DNA of 64,000 nucleotides from Selaginella moellendorffii (Eukaryota; Plantae; Lycopodiophyta): positions 186,001-250,000 of the forward strand of contig NW_003314348.1 of the NCBI RefSeq assembly GCF_000143415.4. The letters run 5' to 3'. The notes below the pieces were generated by a model. The model did not search any database. It was not told where the DNA came from and saw nothing but the letters and a program-made list of their open reading frames with translations. The position numbers were made by a program, and so were the translations under genes. How positions within the stretch are numbered: the stretch's first letter is position 1; every line of letters begins with the position of its first letter. This document shows, piece after piece, positions 7,140 to 64,000 of the stretch.

Positions 7140-8845
7140 TATCTCCTCATGCGCTTACTTCCGGGGCCGAATCCACCATTGTTTGACTGTTGGAGCTCCT
7201 TCCAAGGATCTGGCCAGGGGAATCGAAGGATCTTAGCTATCCAGGAAACGAATGCCTACCTTGTAGAGTAAGATCGTCGGTGATCATATCCAGCTCGAGG
7301 AGATTGAGCAAGCGCCCAGGTCGACACCGCTCGTCCACTTCTCGGGCTGATCGGACCCATGCCGCAGCTTCAGTCGCCCTCGATTCATCGAGCCTCCCCA
7401 GATCAATCCCACCGGCCTGGGCTTGTCACCGTGGAGCGCAAAATCAGGCTGCCACTGTCGCCCTCCGCGTCAAAGTCCCCGCCATCGCCCACCACCAAGA
7501 GATCCGTGAACAAGCACCCGCCCCCTTCGTCTTGGTACTCCACCCCGTACGCGACCACGGTGCCCCGGGTGAGCCCGGTGCTCCTCCCAACTTTGATCGC
7601 CGCCTTGCCCACCAGGTCGTCCAAGTTGATGGTGAAGAGCTCGCCAACCTCGCCAACGAAGGGGATGGTGGCGGTCACGGAGGAGCAGTCGAAGCTGGCG
7701 GCGAAGGGAACGAAGGCTCCATCGGCCCGGACGAAACTTTCTAGCACGTAGCGGCAAATGTTAGACAAGCATTCGGCATTTGCTGGAGAGCGAGAGAGAA
7801 GGCAAGACCTGAACAGCAGGAAGCAAACATCCCGTACCAAAGATCGTCGGTGACGAACGAGGACGCCGGCTCCACGGCGCCCAGGTAGACGCCCTGCCCG
7901 AGCCTCCCAGGAGGTATCGGGTGGAACGTCTTCCGGTACGGGAAGTCAAGGTCCACGGCAACGTGTGTGTTAGTGAGGAACCATAGTGTCGCTTCCCAAT
8001 GCGGCTGCGCACCACGGGCCCAATGGTTCCAAAGAGCTTTAAGCTCGCCACCTTTTCCATCGGGCATCATATGAGCAAATAACTCGGCTATGGTATCTAC
8101 CTGGGATCCAGGACCGATGCGTTGGCTATTCCCTCGCAAGTAGTTGATGAGCTCCGAGTACACCCGTTCTTTTGGGGCCGGAGCCGGCGTGCCATGGAAC
8201 GAGAACTCCACAACGTCGACATCACACCAAGTGAGATTCCCCGGGCCCTGAAAGAAAGATCAAGACTCGAAACGATCCCAAGTGGGGAACCCAAGAGAGA
8301 GGCCAGTGCGAGGACAACCTGCAAGATACGGGGCAGCATTTGCCCGTCGAGCACCCAGGGCATGCAGCTTGCGCGGGACGAAGACGATGATGGCGGGGCG
8401 ATCGGTCACCTGGCTGTTGCGGGTGCGGAAGCCCAGCGCGGTGCCCAAACTCCGGCGGCGGAACAGCTTCCCGTGGATGGCCCGGATCGCCATGAGCTCG
8501 CGCAGCGTTCTGGCCTGGCGTCCCGTCCCCATCGTCTCGCCGCTCGCCATGTTGCTCCAGTGGTGGCTGAGTAGTAGGCGATGCGCTCCACCGCGCATTC
8601 CTCGACGTGGAAGCATGGCAGGCACAGCACGTAGTCGAATAATCCGTCCTTGCGGCCGCGGTAGCGCGATCCTGAGGCGTAGGCCCGCATTAGCGAGCGA
8701 TCTGGTTTCGGGACGGGACTGCCACCAGTGTGTCGAGTCCAAAGATAGCTTAAATAGCGTGGCTAGCCTGCGTTGTTTGGGCTTCCGAGCTCTCGGCGGG
8801 TACGAAGCGCCCGCCAGAGCAACACGAAGAGAATCTTAAACCCAT
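7140..8845 (-). pseudogene. Degraded NAL1-like trypsin-fold protease pseudogene
   Basis: Colinear with 9470-11402 but broken into different frames, with many small deletions; retains RADGAF and GDSGS. Confidence 0.85.
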
Positions 8846-9469: not shown

Positions 9470-11402
9470 CTACAAACTTATCCTCGTGCGCTTGGCGTTC
9501 TGGCGCCCCTCGGCATCGTCGCTACTTCCGGGGCCGGATCTCTTGATCTCGCCTTCCCGTTGCCATGACGAAGGCCCGGGAATGTCTCCAGGTTTCAACT
9601 CGGTGCTACAATCCTTGGACTGTTGGAACTCCTTCCAAGCATCTGGCCAGGACAAGTCAAGGAAGAAGCTAAAGCCTAAAGCGATGGGAATGGATGCATA
9701 CCTTTGAGAGCAAGATCGTTGCTGATGATATCCAGCTGGAGGAGATCGAGCAAGCGGCCCAGGTCGACACCGCTCGTCCAGTTCTGGGGCTCGTGCCCCT
9801 GCCGCAGCTTGAGCCGCCCTCGATTCGACGTGCCCCCCCAGATCATTCCCACCGGCCTGGGCTTGTCGCCGTCGCACAGCAGAATCATGCTGCCGCTATC
9901 GCCCTCCGAGTCAAACTGGCCCCCATCGCCCACCACCAAGAGATCCGTGAAGAAGCACACGCCCTTGTCGTCGTGGTACTCCACCCCGTACGCGACCACT
10001 GTGCCCCGGGTGAGCCCGGAGCTCCGCCCGACTTTGATCGCCGCCTTGCCCACCAGGTTGGCGATGGGGTCGTCCAAGTTGATGGTGAAGAGCTCGCCAA
10101 CCTCGCCAACGCCCTTGATGCTGGCGGTCACGGAGGAGCTGTCGAAGCTGGCGGCGAAGGGAACGAAGGCGCCATCGGCCCGGACGACAGTTTCTGGCAA
10201 CGCGGTAAGCAACATGTTAGACTAGAGAAGCAAGGCATTTGCTGCAAAGAAAAGTAAAGCTTTCGGGACACCTGAGCAGCAAGTAGCAAACATCCCGTAC
10301 CAAAGATCGTCGGTGACAAAGGAGGTCGCCCGCTCCACGGTCCCCAGGTAGACGCCAGGCCCCAGGTTGGGAGGCAGCGGGTGGAACATCTTCTGGTACG
10401 GGAAGTCGAGGTCCACGGCAACGTGCCTGTTGGTGAGGAACCCTATCTGGTGCTCTCCGGTGCGGCTGCGCACCACGGCCCCCATGGTTCCGTATACCTC
10501 CAAGCTCGCCACCTTTTCCATCGTATAGCGTATCATATATGGCGATAGCTATAAGCTGAGACTGTTACCTGGGATCCCGGACCGACGCATTGGTCATCCC
10601 CTCGCAGGCACTCGACGAGCTCCGAGTAGACTTGCTCCTTGGGAGCCGCGGATGAGGCGCCATGGTAGGAAAACTCCACAACGTCGACATCACACCACAG
10701 ATCCCCCGGGCCCTGCGTGACGAGCGAAGAAGAAACAATCAAAACCCAAGAGGGGCCAGTTGGAGGACAAAACCTGGACGGTGCTGGGCAGCATTTGCCC
10801 GTCGAGCACCCACTGGGCATGCAGCTTGCGCGCGACGAAGACGATGATGGCGGGGCGGTCCGTCACCTGGCGGTCGCGGGTGCGGAAGCCCAGCGCGGTG
10901 CCCAGGCCCAGGCGCCGGAACATCTTGCCGTGGATGGCCCGGATCGCCATGAGCTCGCGCAGCGTTCCGGCCTGGCGCCCCGTCCCCATCGACTGCCGGC
11001 TGTCGTCGCTCGTCGCCAGGCTCGCCATGTCGCTGTACTGGCGGCTGAAGAAGCTGCTGCGCTCCACCGCCCATTCCTCGACGTGGAAGCATGGCAGGTA
11101 CAGAACGTAGTCGATCGATCGGTCCTTGTAGCGCGACCCCGATGCGTATGCCCGCATGTAGCGGGCGATCTGGATCCTCGGGACGGGATGCTTGCGGCGG
11201 CTGCCAGATCCACGGTATGTCAGCGCAAAGATCTATCTATCGGATCATACCATGGGAAGAGCTCTCGCCTGCGCTGCTTAGGAAGTGGGCATCCCCGCGG
11301 CTTGGATTTGTGGCACGACAGCGCTACACAGGTATGGTGCGGCGAGTCAAACAGGCAGCTCTCGGCGGGCATGAATCGCCCGGGAGAGCATTTAAAACCC
11401 AT
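9470..11402 (-). CDS. NAL1: NARROW LEAF 1-like trypsin-fold serine protease
   Basis: TLRELMAIRAIHGK...LGTALGFR and WCDVDVVEFSY; triad motifs LTNRHVA, RADGAF and GDSGS; GT-AG introns restore the frame. Confidence 0.85.
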
Positions 11403-18367: not shown

Positions 18368-18808
18368 GGTCTACAGCAATGCGCGCCCCCGGATCTGAAT
18401 GCCTGGCCGCCGCGCTTAGATCCGCGGCTGGAGCTCCATCCCCGCGCCCCCGGCGCTGCAATGCGCTGCTAGATCTGGCCTGGAACCGGGAATGCGCCAA
18501 TTCAGATCCCTGGCAAAGCCGGCGCCTCGGCTGGAAGGCGCCTGCTCTGCGATTATCCCAATCGTCGCCGCCAAAGAGAGAGGGGAAGAAGAAAAGAGAG
18601 ATTCTCCGAGAGAGTGTGAGTGTGAGTGTGTGTCGTGGTGAAACCCTACAGATCTCCTCGCTCTGGATTAGGGTTAGGTCAACCGGTACGGCACGCGATG
18701 ACAAGTTAACGGCTAGGATTGCACTCCCGCGATTCCCACGTGGTCGTACCAAGTGTCGGGATAAAAGAAAGGTGGCCGTACGTAGTGTCTGGATAAAAAA
18801 GTTAATGA

Positions 18809-18881
18809 TGGAGATGAGGGGCATCGATCCCCTTACCTATCGCATGCGAAGCGATCGCTCTACCATCTGAGCTACATCCCC
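18809..18881 (-). tRNA. tRNA-Ala(CGC)
   Basis: GGGGATGTAGCTCAGATGGTAGAGCGATCGCTTCGCATGCGAT...CATCTCCA; G3:U70 pair; T6 terminator downstream. Confidence 0.97.
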
Positions 18882-19037
18882 AATCGTTGGACGCTAACCA
18901 TGTGCTCGCCTAAAACATGAGACTATAACCTAATTTATTATTCTAAGAATATTCGATGTTTAAATTTCCTAGAGCCTCTCAAAACTCTTTTGCCAGAGAG
19001 TTTATTTCATGGACACACTCGCAGCACTGGGAAATCT

Positions 19038-24193: not shown

Positions 24194-25081
24194 ATGGCCC
24201 TAGCGGCATCGTCGTCCTCCTCGTCCGGATTCCTGCGCCTCGCCGACGCCCGGAGGAAGAATTTGCCGCTCCGCCCGCAGCGCAATCTCCCCCAGCTCCG
24301 GACGATGAGCGCCAGGGCCTGCTCGTCCCCGAATTCGTCGTCGGGCACCTCCGCCGGTGGCGATCTGGTGACGAGCGGCAAGAAAGTGGTGCCGTATGCC
24401 AACTATGCCGTGCCCATCGACAATTCCAGCGCCTCCTCCTTCATCACCCGCCCCCTGGCCGAGATCCTGCGCGACATGAACAAGAGGGTGCCGGACAAGG
24501 TGATCAAGATCAAGGTGGACGAAGATGGCAACGAGCTCAAGTACATTCCTTGGTATGTTGAGCTCTTTGCTCTCCTGGTGTTCTTGTGCTTGGAATTTGT
24601 CTTTGTTTTCTCGGTTTCGAAGACTTTTCTTGTCGTAAAAAACATGTTTTTGGTTGTACTGCTCATCGATCTGATGGTTTTGTAGGTTCCATGCCAACAG
24701 GATGCTGAGCTTCTACGCTCCAGGTACGAATTCTCCTTCTCAAGCAAGAAAAGTAACGAGAAAAAGGATTGTTTTTCTCGCAGGCTGGAGCGGAGAAGTT
24801 CGCAACTTGACATTCTCGCCGGACAGCAAGACCGTCTCAGTCGTGTACCGAGTGACGATCCGAGGCTCCGATGGCGAGGTAAGCAAAAATTCCTCTTTTT
24901 TCTAGGCGAGAGCTCTGGAGATCTGTTCTTCCAGATCTCTCGCGAGGCCTCGGGCACCGCTTACATGCACGATGTGGAGTTTGGCGATCCCGTCCAGAAG
25001 GCCGAGGGCATGGCGTTCCGGAGAGCCTGCGCGAGATTCGGGCTGGGCCTCTACTTGTACCACGAAGACGATGCGCAGTGA
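24194..25081 (+). CDS. RAD52-2: Organellar RAD52-like ssDNA-annealing protein
   Basis: Transit peptide; ITRPLAEILRDMNKRVPD, YIPWFHANRMLSFYAPGW and AFRRACARFGLGLYLYHED. Confidence 0.9.
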
Positions 25082-25282
25082 GTGAGAGACAAGCAAAGCT
25101 CTTATAGCTAAGATTTTGCAGTGTTTGAGAGACCTCGCTACGAGAGAAACGACGACTAAGAAATACTCCTTGTAAAGTTGGAGGTGTCTGTTCCATTTTT
25201 TCTATCTTTCCTGCTGGTCACACTTTATTTGAAAAATCATGTAGCACGATTTCGTCGTGAAAACGGAGGCTGTTGCCAAAAG

Positions 25283-25355
25283 TTCCGTTGCCGGGAATTG
25301 AACCCGGGTCTCTCGGGTGAGAGCCGAGTATCCTGACCGACTAGACTACAACGGA
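25283..25355 (-). tRNA. tRNA-Glu(CTC)
   Basis: TCCGTTGTAGTCTAGTCGGTCAGGATACTCGGCTCTCACCCGAG...GGTTCAATTCCCGGCAACGGAA, followed by a TTTT run. Confidence 0.97.
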
Positions 25356-62095: not shown

Positions 62096-62405
62096 CTAGA
62101 CCTGTATGGACGAAATATCACAAAACAAGGCCACAAGAACAAGACAATGATTGCGCGCTTACATTGAAACCCTCCTCTCGCAGGCACCGGAGATGGACAT
62201 CGATCCACTTGCCGCAAGCGTCCTCGCCGTGCTCGGCAATGCATTCGTCCCGCAATTTCTTGGTATCAGGGCAAGCGCAGCAAATCTTCTTTTTTGGAGC
62301 CGCCGCTCCAGCTCCGCCCGATCCAGCTGCCGCCGCCGGAGCCGCTGCTCCAGCTGCTGGCTCCGCCAGCGCTCCCGGCGATCGCTCAACTATCTCCTGC
62401 TTCAT
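62096..62405 (-). CDS. COX17: Cytochrome c oxidase copper chaperone
   Basis: KKICCACPDTKKLRDEC...C...HLRCLREEGFN, then intron 62102-62162 and terminal GTC TAG. Confidence 0.93.
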
Positions 62406-62489
62406 CTTGCCCTAATTTCCCAAGGGTATAACGTTGGTACATTCTTTAGTTCCCAAGGTATATTCGTTGCCCTAAAACCCAAAAACCCT

Positions 62490-62533
62490 ATCCCACGAGC
62501 CGGAGCATAAAATCGTGCCACCATTTCTTTAAG
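62490..62533 (+). promoter_or_regulatory. Putative snRNA promoter (USE-like ATCCCAC plus TATA-like TTTAAG)
   Basis: About -70 and -30 relative to the predicted snRNA start, matching the plant Pol II snRNA layout; both elements are degenerate. Confidence 0.5.
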
Positions 62534-62559
62534 AAGGGCGAGGAGGGCTCTTTACACTT

Positions 62560-62716
62560 ACCCGTCCCTGCCGAGGGTGAGGCGACAGGTTTATGACCGT
62601 ATGGGATGACCTGTCGTGCTGACTTTTTTGTATGGACACATCGTATGTGGGAATCACAGCAGTCTTTTACTTGAAAGGCTGCTTCTCACTAATTTTTGGA
62701 GCCTCGTAATGGGGCA
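62560..62716 (+). ncRNA. U4atac: U4atac minor spliceosomal snRNA (probable)
   Basis: 5' ACCCGT...GAGGGTGA; K-turn hairpin; GTGCTGAC; 3' hairpin; Sm site AATTTTTGG at 62691-62699; terminal hairpin. Confidence 0.8.
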
Positions 62717-62779
62717 CACAAAAATCTCCACTACAAAACCCTAACGTGCCACGTCACATTTTTCTAAATTGCCACGTCT

Positions 62780-64000
62780 TCACTCGTTAATGTTGATGTT
62801 CCTCAGGAGCACGTATGGATCGGAGGTTCCCGGATCGAGTCTCTCGGCAGCCCGAGCCGCCAGCGTGGCCTCGCTGTGGATCTGGCACGAGCCAACGATG
62901 GAGCGCCACGTGGCGGGATCCGGCGGGAAGGGCATCCCGTCCGCCAGCTCCTGGGCCTCGGCGAGCTTGCCCGCGCGGCCCAGGATGTCGACCATGCACA
63001 CGTAGTGCTCCGGAATGGGGGTGATCCAATGGTCGCGGATCATCGAGAAGAAGTAATCCCTGGCCATGTCTAGCAGACCCAAGTGGCTGCAAGCCGTGAG
63101 CGTTGCCACAAACACCACATCATTTGCTCCAATCCCAAAGCCTTGCATTTCGTGAAATAGTGATATCGCCTCCGCGGCATGCCCTTCCAGAGCATACGCC
63201 CCAATCAATGTGTTCCAGGACACAAGGCCTGGCTCTGGCATCTTTTCAAAGATCCCCCTGGCATCAAAAAGATGCCCGTTCCTGGCATATGCCGCGAGAA
63301 GATTGTTCCACGCCCAAACATCGTGTCTGGGCATGGCATCGAACACAATCTTCGCCGTTTTGGTTTGGCCGACGTGTCCGTACGTTGCGGCCAGCGACGT
63401 CCACGCGGATATCCCCCGCCCGGTGAGAAGATTAAACATAATCTGGCTCTCCTCTACGTGACCAGCCCGGGCATATGCTTGGAACAATGCATTATACGGC
63501 ACGAACTCAAAGTACGGCATTCGCTCCAGCAGAATCTTTGCCTCTGTGAGGCATCCGTGCAAGGAATATCCCACCACCATGGCGTTCCAAGACAGAAGCT
63601 CTCGCTTTGGGACCGAATCAAACAGGGACTTTGCGCGAGAGAAATCCCCTCGCACGGCATTTGCAGTGATTGTGGTGTTCCAAGTTACCACGTCCCGCTC
63701 GGGAATCTTCTCAAACACCTGTTGGGCGAGAGCCAAGTGCCCGGCCATTCCGTACGCCGTGAGAACACAGTTCCACGATACTAGCGTCCTCTCGGGCATC
63801 TCATCGAAGACCATCTTCGAGGCCGCGGCGTCCTCGTTGTGTGGAATCAAGGCATTCCAGGAGGCAACGTTCCACTGCGGCATTCGATCAAAGACCTCGC
63901 CACTCTCGCGGGCCTGCCCCTCCTGCGCGTACCCAGTGAGGAGCGCGTTCCAGGATCCCAGATTTCTTTCAGGGATTCGCGCGAAGAACTCTCTCGCTTC
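62780..64000 (-). CDS. PLS-class PPR protein with E-type end, 5' part outside the window
   Basis: Tandem short repeats (VSWNxxxxAY...FxxMPER), LTACSHLGL, HYVCMVDILGRAG and PYVLLRNI. Confidence 0.9.
   Translation of the reverse strand, partial: EAREFFARIPERNLGSWNALLTGYAQEGQARESGEVFDRMPQWNVASWNALIPHNEDAAASKMVFDEMPERTLVSWNCVLTAYGMAGHLALAQQVFEKIPERDVVTWNTTITANAVRGDFSRAKSLFDSVPKRELLSWNAMVVGYSLHGCLTEAKILLERMPYFEFVPYNALFQAYARAGHVEESQIMFNLLTGRGISAWTSLAATYGHVGQTKTAKIVFDAMPRHDVWAWNNLLAAYARNGHLFDARGIFEKMPEPGLVSWNTLIGAYALEGHAAEAISLFHEMQGFGIGANDVVFVATLTACSHLGLLDMARDYFFSMIRDHWITPIPEHYVCMVDILGRAGKLAEAQELADGMPFPPDPATWRSIVGSCQIHSEATLAARAAERLDPGTSDPYVLLRNININE

Follow-up and report, generated by a model that had tools for sequence, protein, structure and literature searches.

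Positions 62560-62716 on the plus strand of the window, by which we mean the whole stretch of 64,000 nucleotides analysed here, are likely to be the U4atac snRNA gene of Selaginella moellendorffii, or the copy of that gene in one haplotype. We found the elements of the U4/U4atac architecture there in their proper order, together with stable hairpins and a match to the Rfam U4atac model that runs over the full length of the model and stays below its threshold. Because the Rfam score is sub-threshold and pairing with the U6atac of the same species is a prediction, we regard the assignment as probable rather than proven. The candidate very probably fills a gap in the annotation with a gene of an already known kind; the result is one at the level of annotation and the mechanism is not new.

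U4atac is essential for the removal of U12-type introns; of the minor snRNAs, it is the one missed most often by homology searches. In Arabidopsis it was described as "previously elusive" (PMC545797), and it escaped detection in several species where U11, U12 and U6atac were found (PMC2396436). A lycophyte U4atac would complete the minor-spliceosome RNA set of a key early vascular plant, and a divergent sequence of this sort would help to improve the Rfam model. The candidate is also a test case for the conservation of plant snRNA promoter rules and of kink-turn geometry.

Family assignment and fold

At curated thresholds, Rfam leaves the gap that holds the candidate empty and reports just three tRNA genes in the 64-kb window. 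A permissive scan aligns the U4atac model, RF00618, with 62561-62703 (+) from model position 1 to 132 of 132, at 30.6 bits. This is the sole Rfam family to match the gap at permissive thresholds, and it does so on the strand and with the start that had been predicted. The E-value is 0.0022 when the 601-nt gap region is searched and 0.24 for the whole 64-kb window, both values having been multiplied by 4,227 Rfam families. Taken by itself, the U4atac model has an E-value of about 6e-5 per window and, by arithmetic, of about 0.2 per assembly, the S. moellendorffii assembly being approximately 213 Mb in size and containing two haplotypes. A single-family expectation of about 0.2 per assembly is suggestive of a U4atac gene and is insufficient alone. 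The gathering score of RF00618 is 53, so the match falls 22 bits short of it. For U4 (RF00015), whose model belongs to the clan of U4atac, the 601-nt search yielded neither a reported nor a suppressed match at E<=10. The original prediction was of a divergent U4atac rather than a U4, and a comparison with the Rfam models of both RNAs had been proposed as a check: U4atac was indeed matched at full length with U4 absent, and the score of 30.6 bits remained below the 53 that a curated assignment demands.

The consensus of RF00618 is essentially that of vertebrate U4atac. It agrees with the candidate in the order of the elements and in their approximate sizes, as the claim of a U4/U4atac architecture implied. 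In the alignment, UAUGA of the candidate stands opposite the AAUGA of the model in the 5' strand of the kink-turn and UGCUGAC opposite UGCUAAC in stem I, and both have AAUUUUUGG as their Sm site. The candidate is longer than the model by about 25 nt, with one additional nucleotide in the 3' strand of the kink-turn loop and insertions in the 3' stem-loop, and only the candidate has a terminal hairpin, to which the model does not extend. U4 snRNA (RF00015) has the overall fold, the platform for 15.5K/SNU13, PRP31 and the Sm ring, and the hairpin after the Sm site in common with the candidate, but the pairing strands of the candidate complement U6atac-type and not U6-type sequence.

The predicted RNA body (62560..62716, +) is about 157 nt long. 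Its 5' end was placed by the distance from the TATA-like box and by the alignment to the model, and its putative 3' end by the terminal hairpin. We compared the folding of each hairpin with that of 200 dinucleotide shuffles; the fold of the whole (161 nt) has a z-score of -4.06. The 5' stem-loop (62582..62617, +) consists of a 10-bp lower stem, a UAUGA/GAU internal loop, a 2-bp upper stem and a GUAU loop, and has a z-score of -3.25, with a fold as good in 2 of the 200 shuffles. Its arms, CGACAGGT (62583-62590) and ACCTGTCG (62609-62616), enclose TAT-GA-CC-GTAT-GG-GA on the plus strand. In a canonical kink-turn, the internal loop is 5+2 and contains sheared G.A pairs in tandem; there is also a bulge of 3 nt whose last nucleotide is U, and an upper stem of 2 bp. 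The UAU bulge, the GA on both strands and the 2-bp upper stem are all present in the candidate and two sheared G.A pairs could form, but its internal loop is 5+3, with an extra U at 62607, and it is capped by a tetraloop, where the canonical form is 5+2 with a pentaloop. The alternative alignment given by Rfam keeps the 5+2 loop and the pentaloop at the expense of the GA on the 3' strand, which becomes AU. Thus, the arms and the enclosed sequence of the hairpin that had been called a K-turn are present as described, while the loop is one nucleotide too long on its 3' side. As modelled, the stem-loop may offer a kink-turn-like platform to 15.5K/SNU13 and PRP31.

A central region (62624..62646, +) that opens with a run of six T residues at 62624-62629 is aligned to the single-stranded part of RF00618. 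It is followed by the 3' stem-loop (62647..62689, +), in which 6 bp, a 5-nt bulge and 11 bp are aligned to the 3' helix of the model; this is the most stable of the hairpins relative to its shuffles, with a z-score of -5.20 and an equally good fold in none of the 200. The Sm-binding site AAUUUUUGG (AATTTTTGG in the DNA) occupies 62691..62699 (+), between the 3' stem-loop and the terminal hairpin, and conforms to the consensus PuAU4-6GPu (PMC2396436). The terminal hairpin, GCCUC-GUAAU-GGGGC (62701..62715, +), is outside the Rfam model and has a z-score of -2.77, one shuffle in 200 folding equally well. All three features had been listed beforehand, the 3' stem-loop as GTGGGAA..CAGCAGTCTTT / AAAGGCTGC..TTCTCAC and the last hairpin as GCCTC/GGGGC, and each was read in the sequence at the positions given here.

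Predicted pairing with U6atac

S. moellendorffii has a U6atac (Davila Lopez et al. 2008, PMC2396436) and so it needs a U4atac. The two segments of the candidate that had been singled out as flanking the 5' stem-loop, ACCCGTCCCTGCCGAGGGTGA at 62560-62580 and GTGCTGAC at 62616-62623, were both read in the sequence. The first contains the stem II strand CCCGTCCCTGCCGAGGGTG (62561..62579, +), which is predicted to pair with U6atac and resembles the stem II strand of Arabidopsis. The second is the stem I strand (62616..62623, +), for which the predicted partner in U6atac is a sequence of the GUUGGCAU type. In Arabidopsis thaliana the U4atac gene is At4g16065 and its stem II strand has been deduced to be CCCGTCTCTGTCAGAGGAG (Wang and Brendel 2004, PMC545797). 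This is identical to CCCGTCCCTGCCGAGGGTG at 13 of 19 positions, in keeping with the original prediction, in which the 5' end was said to resemble plant U4atac rather than U4.

The likeness to the Arabidopsis gene extends beyond stem II. That gene, too, is a single small gene lying between protein-coding genes, and it was found by motif logic since sequence searches failed. Its other counterparts to the candidate are a stem I strand, an Sm site close to the 3' end, USE and TATA elements upstream, which in the candidate are USE-like and TATA-like, and a single-stranded centre that is longer than that of the human RNA. The two genes differ in that four positions of the candidate's stem II would mismatch Arabidopsis U6atac, and in that the 3' half of the candidate's USE is unlike that of the Arabidopsis gene.

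Metagenomes were scanned with a plant U4atac pattern composed of stem II, ATGA and the Sm site, and this returned zero matches. A second metagenome scan, with the Arabidopsis stem II 19-mer, did not find U4atac either; it did find two Arabidopsis-type U6atac genes, which carry the reverse complement of the 19-mer. One lies at 7649-7771 (-) of contig L001 (92 bits) and the other at 9575-9686 (-) of contig L003 (72 bits), both in the JGI metagenome Ga0041059, and their presence on two contigs of this metagenome means that the sample holds DNA of the host plant. The L003 gene has a central deletion, as Wang and Brendel described for atU6atac-2 (PMC545797). The other 19-mer matches, on L002, L004 and L005, were rejected as chance occurrences in bacterial coding sequence.

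The L001 gene served as a stand-in for the U6atac of S. moellendorffii. Against it, 15 of the 19 positions of stem II pair in register (two of them as G.U) and four are mismatched, while stem I forms all eight of its pairs (three G.U) and does so in one register only. The two U6atac segments that are paired abut, as a three-way junction requires. We found, however, that the same pairing thresholds are reached at two other places when both strands of the window (128 kb) are taken as background, and counts of in-register pairs that include G.U were rejected as a test for failing to discriminate against it. Two further tests were rejected, namely duplex folding of the whole molecule with Arabidopsis-type U6atac, in which 829 of 1,000 shuffles performed equally well, and a sliding free-energy scan in 60-nt windows, which ranked the site 10th of approximately 4,260. 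Given the control sites and the energy ranking, we treat pairing with this heterologous U6atac as weak evidence.

Two of the four mismatches in stem II are C.A, opposite C62566 and C62570. The U6atac of spikemoss is expected to carry compensating changes, and an A-to-G substitution would repair each of the C.A mismatches. Its predicted sequence is roughly GUYRGCAC followed by CACCCUCGGCAGGGACGGG, where Arabidopsis has GUUGGCAU-CUCCUCUGACAGAGACGGG.

The window was also searched for U12-type introns, the substrates of the machinery to which U4atac belongs. The motif RTATCCTT is present at five sites against an expectation of 2.4. The sole pairing of this motif with a branch site was rejected as a U12-type intron on the grounds that it is antisense to a long coding ORF.

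Promoter and proposed mode of action

The T6 run at the start of the central region would stop RNA polymerase III. Together with the T5 run of the Sm site, it fits a gene read by RNA polymerase II and argues against RNA polymerase III. Upstream of the RNA is a USE-like element, ATCCCACGAGC (62490..62500, +), which spans -70 to -60 and is centred about 65 nt before the start. It agrees with the plant snRNA consensus RTCCCACATCG (PMC545797), which is an angiosperm consensus, at the first seven of 11 positions and differs at the last four. A USE was also read in the promoter of the Arabidopsis-type U6atac gene of L001. The RTCCCAC core is correctly oriented, at -70. Counting both strands of the window (128 kb), it occurs 12 times, as often as chance would produce, and at that rate the chance of finding one within a 26-nt target window is about 0.002. 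Multiplying the expectation of the U4atac score by that of the placement of the USE core gives, by arithmetic, a joint chance expectation of about 0.2 x 0.002 per genome.

The TATA-like box TTTAAGAA (62528..62535, +) starts 32 nt before the predicted +1, the same TATA-to-start distance as in the L001 U6atac gene. Between the USE-like element and the TATA-like box there are 27 nt. In Arabidopsis a spacing of 32-34 defines the Pol II class and one of 23-24 the Pol III class (PMC8287931), so the candidate falls between two classes that may not be those of lycophytes. The USE- and TATA-like elements had been listed beforehand: both were read upstream of the RNA, with the agreement of the USE confined to those first seven positions. 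Plant Pol II snRNA genes have a 3' box with the motif CAN3-10AGTNNAA (PMC545797), and within 62717-62780 there is no AGT-containing match to it, the nearest sequence being CACACAAAAATCTCCACTACAA.

From the established U4atac/U6atac pathway we can suggest how the gene might work. RNA polymerase II would start about 32 nt past the TATA-like box, aided by the USE-like element at about -70, and would yield a capped RNA of approximately 157 nt on whose AAUUUUUGG sequence an Sm ring would assemble, between the 3' stem-loop and the terminal hairpin. The 5' stem-loop would present its kink-turn-like loop for the binding of 15.5K/SNU13 and PRP31, and stems II and I would form between the species' U6atac and the strands at 62561-62579 and 62616-62623, respectively. 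Paired in this way, U6atac would remain inactive until activation of the minor spliceosome on U12-type introns; the presumed function of the RNA is to act as a chaperone that brings U6atac into the minor tri-snRNP.

The features that depart from the textbook design can be read in more than one way. One proposal is that spikemoss has a functional U4atac with departures that are specific to its lineage, these being the 5+3 kink-turn loop with its tetraloop and a type 3 promoter with a USE-TATA spacing of 27 nt. We consider this stronger claim rather unlikely. If it were true, the platform for 15.5K and PRP31 would be altered, and the spacing rule by which flowering plants choose the polymerase would be different or looser in lycophytes.

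Another reading is that the locus is a paralogue or pseudogene derived from U4atac and that the working gene is elsewhere in the genome. The shortfall in the Rfam score and the extra U in the kink-turn loop would be in agreement with such a decayed copy, as would the degenerate 3' half of the USE, the atypical USE-TATA spacing and the absent 3' box, and many plant snRNA matches are pseudogenes (Davila Lopez et al., PMC2396436). Yet every functional element is intact and in order, the Sm site is perfect and the helices are uninterrupted; moreover, the minor snRNA genes of Arabidopsis are single- or low-copy (PMC545797). On balance a paralogue or pseudogene seems improbable, and we prefer the reading of the locus as the U4atac gene itself.

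Neighbouring genes and other features of the window

The candidate had been placed between COX17 and a PPR gene, and Pfam identifies both of the flanking ORFs accordingly. A look-up for exact copies of these two ORFs returned neither of them. The COX17 coding ORF (62118..62405, -; PF05051, E 6e-19) and the RNA gene are head to head, with 154 bp between the COX17 ATG and the predicted +1. This ORF is 98% identical to the S. moellendorffii protein SELMODRAFT_9047 across 80% of the ORF length, and its second-best match has 85% identity, confined to the conserved domain; this assigns the window to S. moellendorffii or to a species very closely related to it. The PPR ORF (62780..63883, -; PPR repeats, E 4e-51) and the RNA gene are tail to tail, the PPR stop codon being 63 bp past the predicted 3' end of the RNA; a word search with the PPR ORF found only paralogues, with no more than 39% identity. 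As both of these protein-coding genes, which lie outside the RNA gene, are on the minus strand, the 375-bp gap between them must house the 3' end of the PPR gene and the promoter of COX17 as well as the candidate RNA gene on the opposite strand.

This crowding bears on the possibility that the resemblance to U4atac is due to chance, hairpins that belong to the PPR mRNA, in its 3' UTR or terminator, or to the COX17 promoter region having come to mimic the U4atac layout. In addition to the demand that the gap house the PPR 3' UTR and the COX17 promoter, such a mimic would be consistent with an E-value of only 0.24 per window with all families counted, with the chance-rate frequency of RTCCCAC in the window and with the failure of heterologous U6atac pairing to discriminate. 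It would have to explain, on the other hand, a match to the whole model in the correct order, its coincidence with a promoter-like element that is correct in both distance and strand, with a canonical Sm site that has a hairpin on either side and with a stem II sequence of the plant type, all in a species whose U6atac requires a U4atac. With the joint expectation per genome as low as that calculated above, we think chance resemblance very improbable. That the locus encodes the U4 snRNA of the major spliceosome is the least credible reading of all: a U4 gene would likewise have a kink-turn stem-loop between its stem II and stem I strands, followed by a 3' stem-loop and an Sm site, and typically the hairpin after the Sm site that the Rfam U4atac model is missing, but the 601-nt search found nothing for RF00015 at E<=10 and the 5' end matches the stem II strand of Arabidopsis U4atac and complements U6atac. 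A probable U4atac gene is the assignment that we retain for the sequence between COX17 and the PPR gene.

Several other features of the gap were observed. A PPR 3' UTR of any normal length would cross the snRNA gene in antisense (window 62716-62782). Telo box motifs, which resemble telomere repeats (AAAACCCTA/AAACCCTAA), occur on both sides of the RNA gene, at 62407-62490 and at 62735-62743. An TTCCCAAGG(G)TATA..CGTTG motif and an TTGCCCTAA motif are each present twice immediately before the COX17 ATG. The telo boxes and these duplicated motifs are probably elements of the COX17 promoter or 5' UTR that lie within the same gap as the snRNA promoter. The sequence CTAA(CG/AT)TGCCACGTC is present twice, the copies being 23 nt apart, at 62741-62778, between the 3' end of the RNA and the PPR stop codon. 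On the minus strand these copies contain GACGTGGC, a core like that of an ABRE or G-box, in a spot that is downstream of both genes.

Elsewhere in the window, the three nuclear tRNA genes reported by Rfam at curated thresholds are Ala(CGC) at 18807-18882 (-), Glu(CTC) at 25282-25355 (-) and Pro(AGG) at 58521-58592 (+). About 0.9 kb from the tRNA-Glu gene, at 24367-24448 (-), is a sub-threshold match to the box C/D snoRNA snoU83B (23.1 bits, the gathering score being 35; E 2.2), which could be a snoRNA or could be due to chance. A long, intron-free ORF of 586 aa at 55197-56957 (-) may, judging by its motifs, encode a protein resembling the splicing factor SKIP/SNW1.
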